NCBI GenBank assembly: GCA_029953675.1
Contig: JAMWBK010000002.1
Coordinates: 1,116,001-1,180,000, forward strand
DNA from: Rhodosorus marinus CCMP1338
Lineage: Eukaryota > Plantae > Rhodophyta
Length of the DNA: 64,000 nucleotides
Direction of reading: 5' to 3'
Positions 22,671-64,000 of the stretch are shown piece after piece. A program made the position numbers and the translations under genes. Below the pieces are notes generated by a model that was not told where the DNA came from, did no database searches, and saw only the letters and a list, made by a program, of their open reading frames with translations. The stretch's first letter is position 1. Each line of letters opens with the position of its first letter.

Positions 22671-24980
22671 TTACTTTGGACGCAATATGTGCACAACGCT
22701 CTCCGTTCCATACACAGCGAGGGCGTTCTTCTGCGGATGATGGCAGATACCAAGCACGCGACTGGAGAGAACTTTGACCTGTAAAGTTGTTCAGCTTGAA
22801 GTAAGGGCTTTTTCGGATGTGAAAATAGCTGTCGCTCTCTGTGATGGAAGGAGAAGCCCACCTCCGTCAGAACTTCAGAAGTATCATCCGTTTTGAAGAT
22901 TCTTAGAGAGCCATCATCTCCGAGGGCATAAATGAATGTTCCTTTCGCACTGAAGCAGGCATCAGCAACATCTGCTTTTGTGTCAACCTTGGAAGAAAAG
23001 GTGCCATCGGCACTCATGTACTGAAGTATTGGCGAGCGACAGCACACGAGGAACTTTTCCCGATCATCGGGTAGCGGGCACAATTTGAGAACGGAAGTTC
23101 CTTCCCGTACATGCGTTGGTCTAAGCACCTACGAGAAACGAGCAGAAGCTCGAAACAATGAATCCTATGCGCTAGGGCCCGATAATTAGATGTGGAAAAG
23201 CAACCTACCTTAATGCTTTGAGAGGTGTGATTGGACCAGACGCGTATTGTGCCATCAGCACTACCAGTAAAGATAGAAGCACCATCCGCTGAGTAGTGTA
23301 TGTCATTGACGATAGCAGTATGTCCGTGCAACTCCTTGAGTATCTTTCCGCTCTTTAAGCCATAGATTCTAACCGCGCCATCAGGAAAACCAACCAGGAG
23401 CTGTGCACCATCACGGGAGAACTTCATACAACTCGGGGCTCGTACGAGCTCAATGCGTCTGAGGACCTTTCCAGACCTACTCATGACCGCGGTTCATGTC
23501 TTCAGAAAACAGCTGGGATCGAGCATCTCTCCCATTGCCAGTAGTCGTCACCCCATCTTACCTCAGCCTCCACACCTTCAGCTTCTTCTCAGCACCTCCA
23601 GTTGCCAGCATCTCGCCTTCTCGTGAGAAACACATACAGCATATCTTCTCCTCATGAGATATGAGATCATCTTCCGCTTGATACTTCAGGTCGGTTCGAT
23701 ATCTTCCAGATAGGTAGTCCCAAACTTCAATGAACCTGCAGCGAGGTTACAGAGACAAACAGTAAGCATACAACACAGTATACTCCAGATGCCAAGAAAA
23801 AGTTGTTTCGCAACTCAGGATGAATCTAAGAGACTGCCGAACGCAAAGTTCTGACCATGACGGATCTAGGAGGTACGAAGCACGTTCCCGACTGCTCATG
23901 TACTTCATAAAAAACAAGAGCTGCTCGGGAAGACTTGTTCATCAGATTTGAAGCAAATCGCACCACTGCCGAATGGAAAAGGTGAGAGGACGGCTTCTAG
24001 AATGATTGATGGGGAAAACCTTACCCATCAGACGAACCTGTTAGGAACATATCGTCTTTTGGAGAGAATAGAGCGCACTCAGCGTACTGTTTTGTTCCAA
24101 ATTTGATGTTAGTAGTCTGCAAGACGCAAGGTGCGTCGTCCTCAGAGTTGAGCTCCGGGACAATGTTTCTGAAAAGGTCCAGCTTCGTTCCTGGAGGTAG
24201 AAGGCCTTACAGAAGAATAGAATACAACCTAGCGCATGAGCAAAGTGGCCAGTCTCCACCGGGAGAGTCAAGTTTGCTTGGCAAAAGGAAGTACCCTGGG
24301 AGTGCTGATATTTAAGCGACTGGCCAAGAAGAGCAAGTAGGCGGGCTGGTGCAGCGGACGCCACTTCCTTTTGAACGGATTTGGCAAGTGCGTTTCGCCT
24401 GACTTGTTTGGTCGTCCCACTTCCGAAGAGGTTCTCCGAGACATCAACAGCGGCAAGCGAGACGCTTCTTTCCAATGCGAGGAAACGATCTGGATTTCGT
24501 CTCTTCATGACGTCGAAGACAGTCGACTCTCGGAGCATTGCACGAGCAGCGTCGAGCTCCCGCAGCTCGAGCAGCTCCAGAACAACATGTTCGAATAGAT
24601 CGATCACAAACGGTTCCGTCAGACGAAGGCCAGTCAACGCTCGGATCACCGCATCCCATTGACCACTCTCAATGTCTTCCACCAGAGCATCAACGGCATC
24701 AACAGTATTCAAGTACACCTCACATTCTTCCTGTTCCGCGACGACCAACCACACAAAACACAGACACGAACAAGAACTCTACCTGAGTATTAAATACGAG
24801 CAGAATTCTCCGAAAACGCACAACCAAGAACCTCTAAACAGAAGCGCAGGGACACACGACAACGGAGTAACGATCAGCAAAAAATACCTGAAACGTTCGA
24901 AACGTCCTGGAAAGGCCGTTCTCTTTCAAGAATTGAAGAACGACTCTGGCGACATCAGCTGAAGCCACCTCAACGCTCAT
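22671..24980 (-). CDS. SMU1: WD40 splicing factor SMU1 (multi-exon)
   Basis: MSVEVASADVARVVLQFLKENGL (LisH), DIESGQWDAV, LYEHV-like LFEHVVLELLELRE, APARLLALLGQSLKYQ, IYGLKSGKILKELHGH, and C-terminal VLGICHHPQKNALAVY. Confidence 0.95.
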
Positions 24981-26442
24981 TGTTGGAAGAGGTTCAGTCC
25001 ACCGGTTTCCTACTTATATTATATACAAACAACTAGATCATTGTTAAGAAACTTCCTATTTCTGTATGCAAGAGTCATTTGAAAACAACATCTGATCGCC
25101 CCCATCCTCCCTCGTTGTGCAAGCCAACTCCGACCTCTTCCAAATGGGAGTTGGGGTGGGTGGGCCTTGTACAAAGAGGTCCCCCCGCATCCCGAGAATC
25201 ACAGGTGATTAGTGCGACGCTCAATAGTTCGAGACTTTACATTAACCTATGGATTCTTCAGAGGCTATAGGCTCTGAAAGTATTGAGGCGCGTGCTATCT
25301 GTGCACGTTGAGAGACAATGCTGTTCTACTACACCGACAACGTTGGGAAGAGCTGACATGTAAACGCGCAATGAGGTATTCCCTCTCGGAATGTGAGATT
25401 CTTGAGCCTACTGATCACACTTGCTAAACGTCTTACAGGATTCGTCTTATGGTTGATCCATGTTTGAGGTCGACATGAGGGAAACAAAACTGGATCTAGA
25501 TCGTTCGAGGTGTTGCACAGTGAGCTCTGGAGTTATAGGCTAGATGGCAAGTTCTGAGATCTTATCATTTTTACACGAGTATTTCACACAACCTGAAACA
25601 GCACCACAGAAGAAGTTTCCCAATGACGCCGGTTTGTACCGAAACGTAAGTCCATGCCGGTCCTTGTTGAACCGCTTGAGGATATCCAAACGCAAACGAC
25701 CAGTGACAGGTTTTTCACTGTGTCACCAAATTCTGAGACTTCTCCTCATGCCTAAAAACCTCTAGCGAACGGCTTCACCCAGAAGTAACCGTCAGCAATC
25801 TGAGAATTTTTGGAGTACAAGGAGAACCAGTTAGTTATGGTCAGGCTCTCAGAGCGGTCGCCATGCGAAAGAGCAATAAAATCGGTTCATTCCATAACAA
25901 AAGTTCAAGCGAGCAAAAGCGCTGATGGAGTCGAATGGCAGTCCAGCTGAACGTCATTGACAAGGTACCTCTGGTGATCAGCTCGGAAGATTGTGTTAAG
26001 CTGAGAGAATCTAGCGCGCGCAATGCGCCCACATCGGCTTATCCTAGACTAGAAGTAGGTACCAGCGGTTGGAGTCAGGAATATAGCCGTCGTCATCGTC
26101 CCATGCTTGGCTATCTAAGTGCTTTGCTACTGATCATTGCCCTCGTAAGCAAAAACCCCAACGAGGAAAGAAACACAGAATCTTCCTCCCTTTGTTGTAC
26201 GATCCTGCCGCAAGCGGGCTGGACATATTTGCTTGTTACGATTCTTGGGGTTTGAGCTTGATGCAATTTCAAATAAACGTCACAGTGACGGGCCTGGATG
26301 AGAGGAGCAGATGCACCCAATTATCCACTAATCGAGGTACGCAAAGGTCCCGTTGAACGACAACCCAATAGGAGCTACAGAATGTACATGTTAACGGTTA
26401 AATGAAAAAAAGGTCTAAATAAAGACTTGCAATAATACATAC

Positions 26443-26776
26443 CATCGTCATCCTCCTCAGCCCACAACAAACTGCAAGCGTCAGTTAACCCAGCTCCTCG
26501 ACTCACGCTCAACGAACATGAGCTTCGAGTACACAACGCAATACTCCGAGCATACAAGACCCTCTGCGCTGTGAAACCATCGGTTCTCATACCTTGCCTC
26601 AAAGCTCTGTCCATAACCAGCGCATCCAAATGATTCTCAGAAAACCAACCAGGTGCAGAATTCAATATTCCAACACCCGCTTACCTATGGTGCACACCCA
26701 TGCCTCCAGTCCTACGAGTTGCACCGCTCGGCATGTTCAGGGTCCCACGGACCAATCTACCTATACCACTCCTCAT
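26443..26776 (-). CDS. Small presequence-like protein with acidic tail, family copy A (exons 26685-26776, 26443-26606; last exon unknown)
   Basis: MRSGIGRLVRGTLNMPSGATRRTGGMGVHH-R|ALRQ...SCSLSVSRGAGLTDACSLLWAEEDDD-G|gtatgt. Strong donors gtaagc and gtatgt; phases 2 then 1 are consistent. Confidence 0.7.
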
Positions 26777-28260
26777 CCTCCACCTAGAACAAAAAAAATT
26801 ACAACAAACAAACAAACAGAGATCGACCCTAGTCGACACAAGCCAGACCCAAAACCCCTAAAAACCTTTTCAGCAACAAAGTCAAAATAATCGGCCTCGC
26901 TTTACTCCAAAAAGACTCCAGAAACGAGAAATGCGAAAAGAAGAAACTTTTGCTTTTATCCAAACAGACGATCATACAAGGAACCCCAAATGGCCTCACC
27001 CTCCTCATCCTCCCTTCCCTCCCCCCCCCCCGAGCTCTATTGCTCCCTCTTTCTACAATATTCACATGCCCTATCAACTCCATTTGCCATTGGAGATCCA
27101 TGCCAATTGCCTTCTTTCCAATACAAACCAACGAAATACTATAACTCCTTCTCAATTCCTCTATTTTTCATTTTTACCAATCAAACACAGAATCCTTATT
27201 ATTAGTTTCATTATTCAGTAATATTTGGTCAGATCGAGATAGAGGGGTGACAATCCATTCAATCCAAACTTTTGTTTAAAATTTAAATATAAGAATCCTT
27301 TTTTGCCATGTGAAGATCTACATACCCTTTGAAGAATATGGTAAATTAAATCATTTTTATTACTTTTTTAAATGATTTTTAAATTGAATAAAACATATTT
27401 TAGCAATATGCACCAAATTGATTTTTAATTCATATTTATGGAAATGTGTTTTTATAGAACTTTAGGCTTAGCTATAGGATTTTCATTATTGGTCGACTTG
27501 AGCAAACGGTCCCCAGATCGCTATATAATGATTGGTTAGGTCGTCCGTGGAAAAATTCTATTTGAGAGAATTATTAGATAGAAGGAGCATATGGTTCGCT
27601 TGCTTCAACAGTCAGAATGTCTGTGAGTGGTGAACTCATTGAGCGATAGATGGATAAGGACGAATCATGTATCTTGTGACAATATTAGTGTAAACTCGAT
27701 TAGCAGCCGGTCAACTTGGGGAGAAGCTCGTATTGAGGACGACTACCAAAGTTCGAATGTTCGAGCGAGGCACACGTTTCCAACAGGCGATAAATTAGGA
27801 TCCACAAACAAATTTGTTGAGTATCGCTACACAGTTGAAGTTTACTTCCTGGTCGTCTTCTGTGTCTACATGGGTCTGCGCTTAAGCTTGTCTGCTGAAG
27901 TACGTGAGCGATGCCGAGAAAATTCTCCACGCCAACAGAACAGATCAAGCCGTGAATAAATAAACACATGACGACAGCAAGCGATCCAGAAACCAGGTCA
28001 GTACATGAGACGCAAGAGCACAAGAAACAGATACCGATCTGTGTCAGCTATGTCAACTTCGATCGTCGGTCAAAAAAGAAGCAGATTCTCCATCTGAGCT
28101 CAAGTAGCATCTAACAGCCACAAGGTAATCGGTCCAAATCCCAGTTCTGCTTCAATAGGATCACTACAAGTAGAACACTCCGTGGGCTACTCCTCCAAAG
28201 GTTGGAGGTGACGGAGAAAGACTCTTGATCTCGATACAAGAAAATGCTTGCAGGGTCGGG

Positions 28261-28560
28261 CTAAGTACCGTCTTCATCCTCGACATCACCATCAAGTAGA
28301 GCATCAACTAGCCCTGAACTCCTTCCCTTTGAAACGGATAACGAAGACGCATCGCCAATCGCCGCTTGCGAGATACACTTCAGCTCCGGTAAGGACTCAG
28401 CAGAGAGCGTTGAAAAACGAGCCTTCGCAGAGCATGCAGATGTAGAGCTACTAGCACTCATCAAATACCTCGACCCTCGCAGGGTAGAGTCCCGAAGCCT
28501 AGATCTCCTCATCGCAGAAACTCCTAAACGTGACATCCTCAAAAATGCCCTACTACTCAT
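28261..28560 (-). CDS. Small presequence-like protein with acidic tail, family copy B (99 aa, single exon)
   Basis: MSSRAFLRMSRLGVSAMRRSRLR...ASSLSVSKGRSSGLVDALLDGDVEDEDGT*. Confidence 0.75.
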   Translation of the reverse strand: MSSRAFLRMSRLGVSAMRRSRLRDSTLRGSRYLMSASSSTSACSAKARFSTLSAESLPELKCISQAAIGDASSLSVSKGRSSGLVDALLDGDVEDEDGT

Positions 28561-29574
28561 CTTGGCCGCCGAAAACGAAAAATAAAACTTGCTCGCAGCA
28601 CCACCGATCGCCCCCAATCTCTAAAAAACTTTGACCCCCGAGCGCACTTTCGGCCTTTCTACAAACCCCGAGACCCAACCAACCCAGAAAAAAAAAACAC
28701 TTCGGCTTACTCAAATCCAGATCGCGACGCATGTGATTGTCCTCCTTTATCAAACCCTTCCTAAATGATTCGAAGTATTCTAAGCAAAGTCCAATATCCT
28801 AAAAAACAGTTATCCACCTATTTGTATCACGTACGCATTTCACAAAGCGACCTCACTCTCCGCACCCCGCTCTTTTTCTTCCTCCGCTACGGCCAAATGC
28901 ACAGACTCCGCAGAGACGATCAACATCGCCTCAAGCTCTCAACGAAAACTTCAAACAGACACTTGTCAAACAAACACTGGCATATACGTCAAATTAAGAC
29001 ACGTGGCAATGCTTGTTTGAATTATTGTTATGACAGTCTGTCCCGATCGTCGAATGAACTTCCGGCGGAGTCTAATTTATCTAAAAAAAGAGGGGTTAGT
29101 TGTGGCGTTAGCTTTCGAAAGCGGGGGTGGGTGATCTTCTGTCTCGATCAACGAGGCCGAGAGCGCTATAGCCATCTACACGCAAGATCAAGAGCAATGG
29201 TACCGGCCTAGCTAGACAATTTTCTACGTTCCCCGGTCCCCTAAAAAGGAATCTGTCCGTGTCGGAGGAGGGGAGCTCCTGTGCGTCTCGTGTATCGGGC
29301 TAGTTGACTTGTGCTTACTCAGCGGGGAGCCAATACGTACATCTACGTACATCAAGGGCTGCTCCGTTATTTCTGAGGTCTCAAGTTGCAAACAGCTCTC
29401 ACAGTCCCTTCATATGATCTTCTCCTCCTGGTATGCGCAAGGACATGAATGTGTTTGTATTCGAAGCTCATGGTTCGCTCCAACCCCCCTTGCCCTCATC
29501 CCCCCCCAGGTACTAGCAAAGTTGTCTAATCAACTACATAGAACATATCAAATCACTTTTGTTCGGAAGCTCAC

Positions 29575-29961
29575 CTTCGTCCTCCCCCTCGGCAAGCATC
29601 GCAACTTCAGCAAGACCGTGACTAGTGGTAGTAGAAGAGCACCTTAGAACCGTGGAAGGCCGCACTACTTGTAGTCCTGCCCCTGCTAGATCCGCAACTT
29701 GATTAACTTTAACTGCGTTCACGGCCGATGCCCTTGGACCGGCCAACAACGAACTGAAAAAGGCGCCAAACAAAAAACAAAACCGCGTCTGAGTACGCCA
29801 TGCCTCTTCAGACCATTAGAGGCCGTCCAGAGACCAAGCAGCTATGAAAACTGATGCTCTCACCTCGCAGCAACCCCCCTCGACAATCGTCGCGTAGGAG
29901 CGCTCCCTCGAACAATCGAGCTTGTTGCCCTCGACAAAGACCTCATCGTTGCAGCTCTCAT
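29575..29961 (-). CDS. Small presequence-like protein with acidic tail, family copy C (exons 29864-29961, 29575-29753; last exon unknown)
   Basis: MRAATMRSLSRATSSIVRGSAPTRRLSRGVAA-S|SLLAGPR...CSSTTTSHGLAEVAMLAEGEDE-G|gtgagc. Donor gtgaga, acceptor tttttcag; phases 2 then 1. Confidence 0.72.
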
Positions 29962-58198: not shown

Positions 58199-58948
58199 AC
58201 CGGTCGTATCTAAAACGCATCTTCGAATACTTTCTTAGGAGGTACTTCCATCATTTACGGTGTCCTGGAGTGCTGCCGTATCGCGGATATGAACACATCC
58301 TCCTCGTAGTCACTGCTCACAGAAGGGGAGAAGAGTAGGAGAGGCACTGGAGGAATGTCTCCTTCGCTCACGCGGCAGAACGAGCTCCTCCCCAAACGTG
58401 GGGATCCCATTCACCTTCCCATCAAACGGAGCTCCACCATTGGCTTCGGAATCACCTGTGGCTGCAAACCATCACTGGAAAAAACCTGCCAAATCGTATG
58501 GCTAACAAAGCTACTCCTTATCCAGCTAGTCCAAGCTAACAAACCCCATCACAGTCTAACTAACATGGCGCGCCCTACTGTCCCAGATTATCTACACAAG
58601 TACCCCCACTCGGTGAACTCCAGATGCCAAATAAAGTTGAATAATTCAATATCCATGTGATTCCTAGAACGTAAAATAATCATTTTCATGAAAGAATAGA
58701 TTGTAAAATAAATATTTTATAATGGATGTGCATTACTGAAATCAATAAACCAGTTATGATCCATGTGTTTTGGGACAGCTGAAAATGTTGGTTTGATCGC
58801 GATGAATATGGGCGTGAACGCTATGGCCGTGTTATGGTTGCACGGCGTTGAAGTGGATGGTATTGGAGCTCGCGCGTAGATGTGTACATATGTGAATACA
58901 CAGGTCTTAGCAGAAAATAGGAGCGTTCTTGATTAACTGTTATTCAAG

Positions 58949-59368
58949 ATGAGAGGCCAAAGCGCGGCTCGAGCGATGAGGATGTATTGTCGATCTGCTG
59001 CGATGAAATCGGTGAAGACCAAGTTGAGGTCGGCAGCATCTCGGGATCTTGTGAGGTGAGGAGAGGGGTTTGCGGCGAGAAGGGCTGTAGATTTCTTCAA
59101 GTTTTTCTTCATTTGCTGAAAGATTGCATGTATTCGCTTGCTTTCTGTTTTGTGTTTGTTTTCTTGAACAGGGTGAGTTCGATGAGATCTTTGGCGATGA
59201 TGCGTGCGGTCAAAAAGCCCTCGGAAAGTAACTGCTTTGTCAATGACACCAATCTGCCTCACTGCATAGGAGGAAACGTGGCTGTGGATCAGGATGGATC
59301 TTCGACTGTTCCAGCGTCGAGAGGTTTAGGCATAGTGTTGGAAGGCTGTGGTGAAGGAGAAGACGATG
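58949..59368 (+). CDS. Small presequence-like protein with acidic tail, family copy D (exons 58949-59055, 59172-59368; last exon unknown)
   Basis: MRGQSAARAMRMYCRSAAMKSVKTKLRSAASRDLV-R|VSSMRS...GSSTVPASRGLGIVLEGCGEGEDD-G|gtacgg. Phases 2 then 1. Confidence 0.72.
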
Positions 59369-60249
59369 GTACGGATCCAACCAGGCGAACGAACTTAACG
59401 CTTTCATCCAGATTGGGGAGGAAGGAGTTTTCAATCCGTTCTCAGCGTAGTTCCCATTGTCTTCTCTTTTTTGTGGATTTTTCGGCATCTATAGAATCAG
59501 TAACAAGCTCGAGGTATCCAAGCTAACATGAATTCCACCGCCTCTCCCTCTTCCCCCCCCCCCTACCCCCCCCTTCGCCCCACTGTACGAAACTCTTCAA
59601 AACAGAGTTGGAGAAGAAAAGATCGCAGACCGAACGTATTTCAGATACGTGATGGAAGAAAGAGCTAGAGAGCGGGAGCGTGAGAGCAAAAGGAGTGGCC
59701 AGAAGAGTTTTCTTCCGAGTCTTGTTTTCAGTTTGATAATTACTTGTTTAGTTTGCTCCGCTGTTGTTTCAAATGATTGCTGCGTATACAAAAGAGATCC
59801 ATTCAATTCTGATCGTCTTCCGCTTGAGGCGCTATGTATGGTTTCAACGAAGTCCGAAAACATATTTTGCCTCTCAAAAGTTATAAGATTTTGATTGACG
59901 AAGTGTTGCGCTCATTGACATCGAGAAAATAAGGACATGCACACAAAGAAAAACTCAACCCAAGGGTTGAAGACCCGGCCCCTCGCTTTGTGACTCTTCC
60001 TTATTTTGATCCACGCACTGGACGCTTTGCGCTTTGACACATTTGCAGGGTCAATAAAATGCTGCAAGACGCCCCCTTCTATAAATCCTCTCGTGCACGT
60101 GTGTAAACCTTATCCAATTGGCCCCCTGCTGCCAGAAACACGCAGAGATGGTCCGAGAATCCCGACTGTCTACTCACTCACGGGTTTCATCTCAACGCAC
60201 TAGTTCTACATTATTTGCACTGCTTCTTCTTCACGTGTTCCTCTCCATG

Positions 60250-61736
60250 CTAATCCTCAAAGCCCATTTGTAGGTCACCAATATCATGGATCTCGTCGTT
60301 GTCATCATTGTCGTTGCTCTTAGTCATTGTATAAGCGCGGTTGCCTATAGGGGCAGGTTGTGGTCTGGAACTATCGCTCGTTGCTAGGTAATCATCACTC
60401 GTCCATATGCCAGCCTGGCCGCCTAGTCCACCTGCCCATGGTTGATTTACTCCTCCCCCGGCAAGCCGACTGGGGAGGCTGTGCTCGGTGATCGCTAAGA
60501 GCCGCGAGTTGCTAGGGCTTCCGCGCAACTCGTCCGCTTTCCTGTACAACTGCCTCTTGATTTCGATGCTCTGAGAGGGCTCTCGATATGCATCCGCCTC
60601 AACACGAGAGGAAGTAGATCCCAGCTCAACAGGTCTGGAAGGAGTTGGTTTGCTTGAGAATGAATGCGTGCACGCGTGTTGGTCACCAGACAGCGCAAGG
60701 TCGTCCATTTGAAAGTTCAGATCGTCCTGATCTCGGTCAAACGTGCGCCTCAGTCCCGGGTGGTGAACAGAGAAGTTATCCATGCCTTGGCCCTGCGAAA
60801 GAACGCTAAATGACGGCACGGATTGAGCCATAATCATGCTCTGCGACCTCTCGAGGTTGAGTTCCCGAGTCGGGAGTAGCTTTGACGATTCACGATCATC
60901 TGGAAGTGGCATCAGCAGTGATTCAATTATCTCGGCAGCCTTAGAAAGCGCATGACTCCCTGCAGCATCCCGCATATCGGTCTCAATAATAACATGCAGA
61001 GGCTCGCTAAACGCGTGCTCGTATCCTGGCTTTCCACGCACATCGTTTTCCTTCTCCTTCCGAATTGATCCTTTGCCTCTAATCATTATTCTGCACCCAG
61101 TCTCTTTCTCTAGATGCTTCAGGGTTGCCCCCCGTGGTCCAAGAAGTCGACCTACAAAGTTGTAGTCAGGGTATCTGTCCACAGGGATCATGAGCTTGAT
61201 GCGTTTCTTCGATGCCGAGCCGAGTCCGTTGGCAGATAGCATCCTCTGGCTCAAAGAGGTCTCAAGAAATGACTGCTGATCTGGTATCGGCAAAAAGCTC
61301 TCCTCATGCTTTGCTAACGATGACGAGGTCCGCATCAAAGATTGCATCCTGATTATCTCTGTTATTTGGGGTAGTTTCAGATGGAGTTGTATCAGCAACA
61401 ACGCTTGGGAGCTTTCCAAAACGTCAGAATATGAACGTTCAAGTTGCTCACCGGCATCCAGCAAGTTCATAACCAACGGGACATGCGCTCTCATCGGATA
61501 GAGGCGTTGTTTTTCTCTTAGAAGTTCATCCAGTTGACTGCTATACAAGCACAGCAATCAAATAAAAAATAAAAAAATGTTTCCTTAATATGAGTCCTGA
61601 TGTACGCTTTTTTGTTTTCGACAGAGCAGCAGATCTCAATCACGAGTCGACGGTGGAAGAGACGCGACCAAAAAAAAACCAAGAAAAAAGCGCCCCCAAA
61701 AAAGTTTCCTTACTCCAAAGACTGTGAACCGTCCAT
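60250..61736 (-). CDS. STAR/Quaking-family KH-domain RNA-binding protein
   Basis: LDELLREKQRL (QUA1-like), IPVDRYPDYNFVGRLLGPRGATLKHLEKETGCRIMIRGKGS, EPLHV. A 93-nt in-frame intron at 61359-61451; exon 1 MDGSQSL at 61736 is tentative. Confidence 0.9.
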
Positions 61737-63199: not shown

Positions 63200-64000
63200 G
63201 ATACGTCACGTCAATACTTAGCCGTCGGAGGATTCTGGTTTTGACCGCCACACCGTTGTCACAGAGGCTTGGAGAAGAGACATCTACAATTCTCGCGCAG
63301 ATGATCAGCAGGGGCGCTTGATACAAGAACATCTGTAGTGACAAGTTTTTCTTCAGATCGGTACACAAAATCGCGTAGATGCTCAGGAGATCTCTCTACA
63401 AAACCTGCTCGCCATCCACCGACGAGCTGTCACTTTCAGCATCACCACCTGGACGGAAGATCAGTCCAGAGCATACGCTGTCTTGTCATCCCTTGCCAAC
63501 CACAAAGGTACATTTGATTAAAACGGAGAACACCATTGTGCACATGTCGAAAGCATCCGGCAACGTATTGGGTTGTGGTTGGAAAGCGAAACATTCAACA
63601 TTCTGAATCTATGCCAGCTGCAGTACCGATCAATCATGACGGAGCTCATCACCGGGTACCAGGTAGATTACTGCGCAACTACTTAGTCGATTGCCCGTTC
63701 ACGTCAGCAGATATGAATGGTAGGGCTTCCGTCGTTGGAGTCTGAACAAGCCTGGAGTTACTGGGGCAATAACATGCACTCGGATGTCCGGTGCTGCTTA
63801 CGAAGAGGGGGACGAGGGTAATAAGCTCGGCTTTGGACAGAGCGGTTGGTCGTGCTCCAGCCCCAACTCGACGTATGCATACTTCAACATCATTGTGGCT
63901 GCAGCTTTGCTTGAAGGGTAGAGAGCAGGACTATTTTTCCAACTTTCCAGTCACGCCACCAATCACGCCGCTAGAGAAACTGCTTGTATTTTCGACAAGA
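63200..64000 (+). other. Possible fragments of a superfamily-2 (SNF2-like) helicase gene or pseudogene running off the window
   Basis: RRILVLTATPL (~63225-63260, motif III-like) and EKLLVFST (~63975-64000, motif IV-like), with an exon-like frame at 63357-63508 between them. No DEAH seen. Confidence 0.22.

Follow-up and report, generated by a model that had tools for sequence, protein, structure and literature searches.

A three-exon small-protein gene of the red alga Rhodosorus marinus and its probable kinship with a tandem trio on the opposite strand

Introduction

Is the short, intron-bearing reading frame that begins at position 58949 of the stretch of DNA analysed here a genuine gene, and does it share ancestry with three similarly built reading frames on the opposite strand? 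The stretch, hereafter the window, comprises 64,000 nucleotides of nuclear DNA from the red alga Rhodosorus marinus CCMP1338 (contig JAMWBK010000002.1 of assembly GCA_029953675.1), and all coordinates refer to it. The nuclear genome of this strain spans 31 Mb and holds 8392 genes with 24,821 introns (PMC10250338). The GC content of the window is about 47%, and the neighbouring genes are ordinary eukaryotic ones, encoding porphobilinogen deaminase (PBGD), a GDSL esterase, and HSP20-like, SMU1-like WD40, arginine-deiminase-like, Hint-domain, CDC20-like and KH/BBP proteins; a tRNA scan and an Rfam scan of the whole window returned zero matches.

A sequence-only reading had described at this locus a basic leader, a phase-2 intron, an SS..ASRG block and an EGEDDG|gt end, and had taken it for a dispersed and inverted member of a small family clustered 29 kb away. 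All of these elements are present where they had been placed, and the cluster genes (which we call A, B and C, the locus itself being gene D) do lie on the minus strand at that distance.

Results

Structure and transcript support of gene D

Gene D, at 58949-59526 on the plus strand, is a genuine three-exon nuclear gene of R. marinus that the deposited annotation mis-models. Its parts are as follows.

58912..58948, plus strand: minimal 5′ UTR, aligning with the 5′ end (positions 3-39) of L001, a transcript contig of a relative
58949..59055, plus strand: exon 1, coding, 35 codons plus 2 nt, with the basic leader MRGQSAARAMRMYCRSAAMKSVKTKLRSAASRDLV(R), conserved in P0001 and P0007
59056..59171, plus strand: intron 1, 116 nt, GT..AG, phase 2, missing from L001, P0001, P0002 and P0007
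59172..59368, plus strand: exon 2, coding, with the core QDGSSTVPASRGLGIVLE followed by the acidic run EGEDD and ending in G|GT
59369..59494, plus strand: intron 2, 126 nt, GT..AG, phase 1, removed in L001, P0001, P0006 and P0007
59495..59526, plus strand: coding part of exon 3, (E)SVTSSRYPS and a TAA stop, matching the C-termini of P0001 and P0007
59527..59962, plus strand: 3′ UTR, aligned with L001 379-812 at 78.5% identity and heading for a convergent KH-domain gene

The gene starts at the ATG at 58949, its first 35 codons forming the basic leader, and its product is 111 aa long. Intron 1 is bordered by the donor AG|GTGAGG at 59055|59056 and the acceptor ACAG|G at 59171|59172; exon 2, which contains the block SSTVPASRG, ends at the phase-1 donor GAAGGAGAAGACGATG|GTACGG at 59368|59369, and the acceptor of exon 3 reads TATAG directly before 59495.

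Evidence for splicing comes from L001, a JGI transcript contig of 1470 nt from a sample of a relative rather than from CCMP1338, which aligns with the window in three blocks (58912-59056, 59170-59368 and 59494-59962). A protein search with the spliced D peptide further retrieved P0001, an MMETSP ORF of 113 aa with 84% identity, and the JGI protein P0002, the full form of which is P0007 (112 aa). Across junction 1 the proteins P0001, P0002, P0006 and P0007 read ...SRDL(V/A)R(A)SS..., and across junction 2 the orthologue proteins read ...GEDD|ESVTSS..., the C-termini after ...GEDD being ESVTSSRHPS and ESVTSSWHPC in P0001 and P0007. These transcript-derived sequences of related strains support both junctions of gene D, and do so across lineages; the samples presumably represent Rhodosorus, because identity is 80-88% and gene order is conserved. 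The junction 59055/59172, which the sequence-only reading had put forward for checking, is thus supported by L001 and by orthologue proteins, and the G|GT at 59368 is a used donor, L001, P0001, P0006 and P0007 all being spliced there. What that reading had called an acidic tail ending at 59368 needs correction, as each family member runs on into a short further exon and the acidic run is subterminal.

Intron 2 is also found retained, in the MMETSP-lineage transcripts P0003, P0004 and P0005 (...GEDDGTDPTSRTNF...). P0003 is the one retained-intron-2 form that covers junction 1, and intron 1 is removed there; P0004 and P0005 begin downstream of that junction. The retained intron runs into a stop in the MMETSP lineage (P0003-P0005). 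In CCMP1338 it holds no in-frame stop, and its retention would add 42 residues while keeping the usual C-terminus. Downstream of the coding region, L001 (379-1470, window 59527-60561) proceeds antisense into the last ~100 codons of the KH/BBP gene, at 59961-60561, which suggests either overlapping convergent 3′ ends or a merge in unstranded assembly; the 3′ UTR of gene D may overlap this convergent KH-domain gene.

Two other products have been ascribed to this locus. The deposited model, in the GenBank-derived annotation, is a 74-aa gene at 58802-59231 on the plus strand, and the sequence-only reading had named the 179-aa unspliced ORF at 58987-59526, which stays open across both D introns, as the product that would contradict its own account. 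We regard it as extremely unlikely that either is the true product. The 74-aa model ends (stop at 59229-59231) in another frame than the conserved exon 2, so that the conserved D protein is effectively unannotated, and the 179-aa ORF would have to start at a TTG and runs through exon 1 in the wrong frame. No relatives of the 74-aa or the 179-aa product appeared, and the related ORFs from three lineages, like the orthologous transcripts, all use the 111-aa frame without intron 1.

A tandem trio of cluster genes

A scan of the window for acidic codons followed by G|GT, a pattern search that had been proposed on a genome-wide scale, returned six sites. Four belong to genes A-D, and three of these, each preceded by a leader-type ORF, are confined to 3.5 kb of the minus strand. 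The models below combine orthologues and transcripts of the relative.

29028..29961, minus strand: gene A, 109 aa; exon 1 29961-29864, intron 29863-29754, exon 2 29753-29575 (ending EGEDE G|GT)
29574-29081 and 29080-29028, minus strand: 3′ part of gene A, an intron and exon 3, the latter encoding DKLDSAGSSFDDRDRLS and a stop; basis of the gene A model, orthologue P0011 and transcript L005
27866..28560, minus strand: gene B, 106 aa; exon 1 28560-28269, lacking the first intron and ending VEDED G|GT
28268-27895 and 27894-27866, minus strand: 3′ part of gene B, an intron and exon 2, the latter encoding ADKLKRRPM and a stop; basis of the gene B model, orthologue P0008 and the 3′ part of L005
26044..26776, minus strand: gene C, 86 aa; exon 1 26776-26685, intron 26684-26607, exon 2 26606-26443 (ending EEDDD G|GT)
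26442-26049 and 26048-26044, minus strand: 3′ part of gene C, an intron and the coding part of exon 3, the latter encoding V and a stop; basis of the gene C model, orthologue P0009 and transcript L006

The JGI sample that yielded L001 also provided the contigs L005 (A followed by B) and L006 (C), which match the predicted exons of the three genes and reveal their last exons. These transcripts and the orthologues of the relative identify the G|GT after the acidic run as a used donor in A, B and C. The deposited models depart from this picture in each case: that of A (29399-29946, minus strand) has a different exon 3, that of B (28261-28536, minus strand) is an unspliced 91-aa frame ending ...EDEDGT and a stop, and that of C (26328-26776, minus strand) uses another acceptor, at 26374. 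Four R. marinus gene models are thereby corrected, D having been effectively unannotated and the last exons of A, B and C wrong or missing.

The two remaining sites of the scan are not family members, as neither has a matching leader ORF or the core motif described below. One (26997-27012, minus strand) sits 220 nt upstream of the gene C ATG in G-rich sequence, with a stop 13 codons before the acidic run, and could be the relic of a dead copy; the other (63802-63820, plus strand) lies at the window edge.

Several further observations concern the cluster. The A and B orthologues stand on one contig with the B intron spliced (L005 1-1363, window 30074-27848, minus strand), which may reflect either read-through (or dicistronic) transcription or the joining of overlapping UTRs during assembly. 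In gene C the stop comes after one codon of exon 3, and the orthologous transcript carries on past it (L006 457-1061, window 26048-25216, minus strand), taking in at least two further spliced segments (26049-25969, 25801-25394 and 25307-25216) and ending about 236 nt upstream of the start of the SMU1-like WD40 gene at 24980; this tail is either an intron-containing 3′ UTR, a layout of the kind associated with NMD, or else the C ORF lies within a long SMU1 mRNA leader. [quoted passage not shown]

Evidence for and against common ancestry

The four genes share a common plan, in which an exon 1 of 92-107 nt ending AG|GT is followed by 164-200 nt ending (D/E)n-G|GT and then by a short last exon, with exon 1 unsplit from the following segment in B. 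The phase-2 AG|GT boundary stands 107 nt after the ATG in D, 98 nt in A and 92 nt in C, with transcript-confirmed introns; B keeps an in-frame AG|GT at nt 92 without an intron, as far from its ATG as the gene C intron is from its own. The acidic run with its phase-1 G|GT donor is spliced in all four genes (P0001/P0007, P0008, P0009 and P0011; L001, L005 and L006), and the intron phases, 2 and then 1, agree between D and the cluster genes. The earlier claim that both splice positions had been retained accordingly stands for A, C and D and is to be qualified for B.

Two short sequence patterns accompany this plan. The 13-nt donor context GANGACGANGGTR, for whose definition A and C suffice, has three matches in the window, in A, C and D, against 0.06 expected, and the core motif SS.{3,5}S[KRH]G.{0,4}L, with ranges set by A, B and C, occurs in the six-frame window only in A-D, against 0.74 in shuffles, although both tests are partly post hoc, their design having followed inspection of the sequences. 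Extending the motif to include the acidic run (SS.{3,5}S[KRH]G.{0,4}L.{8,13}[DE]{3}) gives four matches, exactly A-D, against 0.00 in shuffles, with one residue of slack in the spacer ahead of the acidic run needed for D. In all four proteins the G-L of the motif sits 13-15 residues ahead of the donor.

Ordinary similarity statistics fail to show homology, and for this reason the membership of D rests on architecture and one short motif. Within the cluster, local alignment against shuffles gives p ~0.02 for A-B and ~0.01 for B-C. Smith-Waterman comparison of D with A, B and C yields z-scores of -0.2 to 1.25, within shuffle noise; an HMM built from A, B and C scores the D ORF at 3.4 bits (E=9.5), rank 20 of 1396 ORF pieces in the window; hhalign places D 64-95 on B 59-88, a colinear region, at P=0.012 with a probability of 3.5%; and a tblastn search of the window with the spliced D peptide gave no paralogue. 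The last exons are unlike one another, reading ESVTSSRYPS in D, DKLDSAGSSFDDRDRLS in A, ADKLKRRPM in B and V in C.

One may therefore postulate that D is a real small gene unrelated to A, B and C, its likeness to them convergent, of a sort open to any small protein that combines a basic targeting leader with an acidic C-terminal region, and the matching intron phases coincidental. The shuffle-level alignment scores, the weak HMM score and rank and the differing third exons all agree with this scenario, and basic leaders and acidic runs, being low-complexity features, could arise convergently. Against it stand the donor context common to A, C and D at far above its expected frequency, the presence in D, and nowhere else in the six-frame window, of a core motif derived from A, B and C at a like distance from the donor, the choice of a colinear region by hhalign, and the equality of intron phases and exon sizes between D and the cluster genes. 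We consider convergence unlikely on this evidence, and hold it quite likely that gene D is an ancient paralogue, by now strongly diverged, of the three tandem genes on the minus strand at 26-30 kb. For the family membership asserted by the sequence-only reading there is accordingly support in the leader, in where and in which phase the introns fall, in the SS..S[RKH]G..L block and in the acidic-run donor, but generic similarity does not show it (E=9.5, P=0.012).

Coding status and selection

Between lineages the ORFs of A-D are intact, their indels are all in frame and their stop positions are kept; the only indel between D and L001 is in frame. Estimated against the orthologous transcripts by the Nei-Gojobori method, dN/dS is 0.30 for A, 0.74 for B, 0.53 for C and 0.51 for D. 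Pooled over the 412 codons of the four genes it is 0.49, with non-synonymous changes below the neutral expectation (binomial p=8.7e-5); the comparison with orthologues that had been suggested for this locus thus gives a value below 1, but above the 0.19 obtained as a control for the final 103 codons of the adjacent KH gene. The 18-residue core of D, QDGSSTVPASRGLGIVLE, shows four synonymous and no non-synonymous differences from L001, and the other reading frames of D contain 4-13 stops. Since the pooled ratio falls significantly short of 1, every indel preserves the frame and stops are kept, genes A-D are coding but fast-evolving, under moderate purifying selection.

These results bear on a different scenario, in which the transcripts act as regulatory or in essence non-coding RNAs (short upstream ORFs, or read-through from neighbouring genes) whose peptides have no function of their own. 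In its favour, the ORFs fill only the 5′ part of longer contigs (L001, 1470 nt; L006, 1069 nt), A and B share contig L005, the stop of gene C is followed by at least two further spliced segments that end ~236 nt upstream of the SMU1-like gene, dN/dS is high at 0.3-0.74, and no fold is predicted for the product. The four ORFs, however, remain intact across lineages with in-frame indels only and identical stop positions, the pooled ratio is significantly below 1, the changes in the D core are synonymous only, and the alternative frames of D are interrupted by stops; we judge this scenario very unlikely.

Distribution of homologues

We searched 1.84 billion representative proteins exhaustively with a profile, the query being an alignment of D, two D orthologues, A, B and C (gene A without its short third exon). 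Six proteins were recovered at E<=1e-3, namely a D orthologue, P0008 (B), P0009 (C), P0011 (A) and, as plainly spurious matches, two long repeat proteins. The prediction that more members would be found elsewhere was therefore not borne out by this search, which gave four orthologue groups, although it would miss unannotated copies and members whose divergence matches that between D and the cluster genes. It detected no homologues beyond close relatives, presumably Rhodosorus. A Pfam search at E<=10 gave nothing above noise (sub-threshold chance matches to DUF6422 and DUF7466), and a sequence profile search of the PDB likewise gave no match above noise. The genes probably constitute a lineage-restricted small-protein family of four members, and there is no known family in which to place them. 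Of the earlier statement that the family is real and old, the first part probably holds, and A-C, too, are expressed and conserved in the relative; the second holds relative to the strain split only, no homologue having been found beyond close relatives.

Features of the predicted proteins

The first 35 residues of D carry a net charge of +8 with one acidic residue, and those of all four proteins +7 or +8 with 0-1 acidic residues. The D leader is rich in Arg, Ser and Ala and has almost no acidic residues; the leaders of A-D in general are rich in Ser, Thr and Ala and lack a hydrophobic segment (maximum 19-residue Kyte-Doolittle mean 0.52-0.96), and in each protein the first ~12 residues are well conserved between strains. 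The C-terminal 30 residues of each protein are net acidic. AlphaFold2, run with the shallow family alignment, returned a mean pLDDT of 52 and a pTM of 0.14, the sole secondary structure being a helix at residues 5-15; the D product is thus predicted to be intrinsically disordered. Identity as a secreted signal peptide or pro-peptide with an acidic pro-region was considered and rejected, there being no hydrophobic core in any of A-D.

Such a leader composition fits both mitochondrial presequences and algal plastid transit peptides. Among the functional readings we hold tentatively that A-D may be nuclear-encoded micro-proteins that are imported into an organelle and processed to acidic, unstructured peptides of ~50-60 residues, an idea drawn from the composition of the leader. 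The leader would then be an import presequence, with the mitochondrion a somewhat likelier destination than the plastid, and the delivered product would be the ~50-60-residue acidic, unstructured peptide. N-terminal Phe is common in red-algal plastid transit peptides; among A-D only gene B has a Phe near the N-terminus. PBGD, a plastid enzyme encoded in this window, starts MIGFVNG. Two points count against a simple presequence, the restriction of this Phe to gene B and the conservation of the first dozen residues between strains, which is atypical of presequences. Exons 1-2 could represent the functional unit, with the last exon free to vary, as the copies have unrelated last exons, that of C amounting to one codon. 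Alternative roles are those of a charged, disordered cytosolic or nuclear protein, or of low-function peptides on regulatory transcripts.

Discussion

Taken together, the explanation that we consider likely is that of a three-exon gene D with a disordered product, a diverged paralogue of A, B and C, for which import is inferred. If so, the locus offers a clear case in which intron positions and phases outlast recognisable protein similarity, which would be useful for tracing paralogy in fast-evolving orphan genes. There is no sign of a new mechanism in A-D. Should the leaders prove to be import signals, the genes would extend what little is known of the organelle proteome in a red alga whose mitochondrial genome is unusual. 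One may go further and postulate that A-D are imported acidic micro-proteins specific to Rhodosorus, or possibly to Stylonematophyceae, that serve an unusual organelle biology such as a reduced mitochondrial genome of high-copy minicircles, exons 1-2 forming a portable cassette of leader and acidic peptide onto which varied terminal exons have been grafted; this is a speculation to which we attach only slight probability.

Several known systems invite comparison. CP12-type chloroplast regulators are likewise small, acidic and disordered, with a transit-like leader and few cysteines; the AWD_VEEL core and the C-terminal Cys pair of CP12 are, however, missing from the A-D sequences, and identity with CP12 (Pfam PF02672) was rejected, as no match was obtained even at E<=10. 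The likeness to organelle proteins that bear a mitochondrial presequence or a red-algal plastid transit peptide lies in the leader, which is rich in Arg, Ser and Ala, nearly free of Asp and Glu and devoid of a hydrophobic core, with a short N-terminal helix predicted. Unlike such proteins, A-D have no recognisable mature domain or identified cleavage motif, and their N-terminal residues are conserved between strains.

Taxonomically restricted, tandemly duplicated families of small-protein genes are a common phenomenon, and A-D resemble the orphan families of this kind in eukaryotes in their short ORFs (86-111 aa), in the confinement of homologues to close relatives, in the arrangement of a tandem cluster with one dispersed copy, and in their elevated dN/dS and predicted disorder. 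They differ from such families in having preserved the exon plan, with its intron phases and positions, to an unusual degree over a protein divergence that leaves almost nothing recognisable of the sequence, and in carrying a replaced last exon in each copy.
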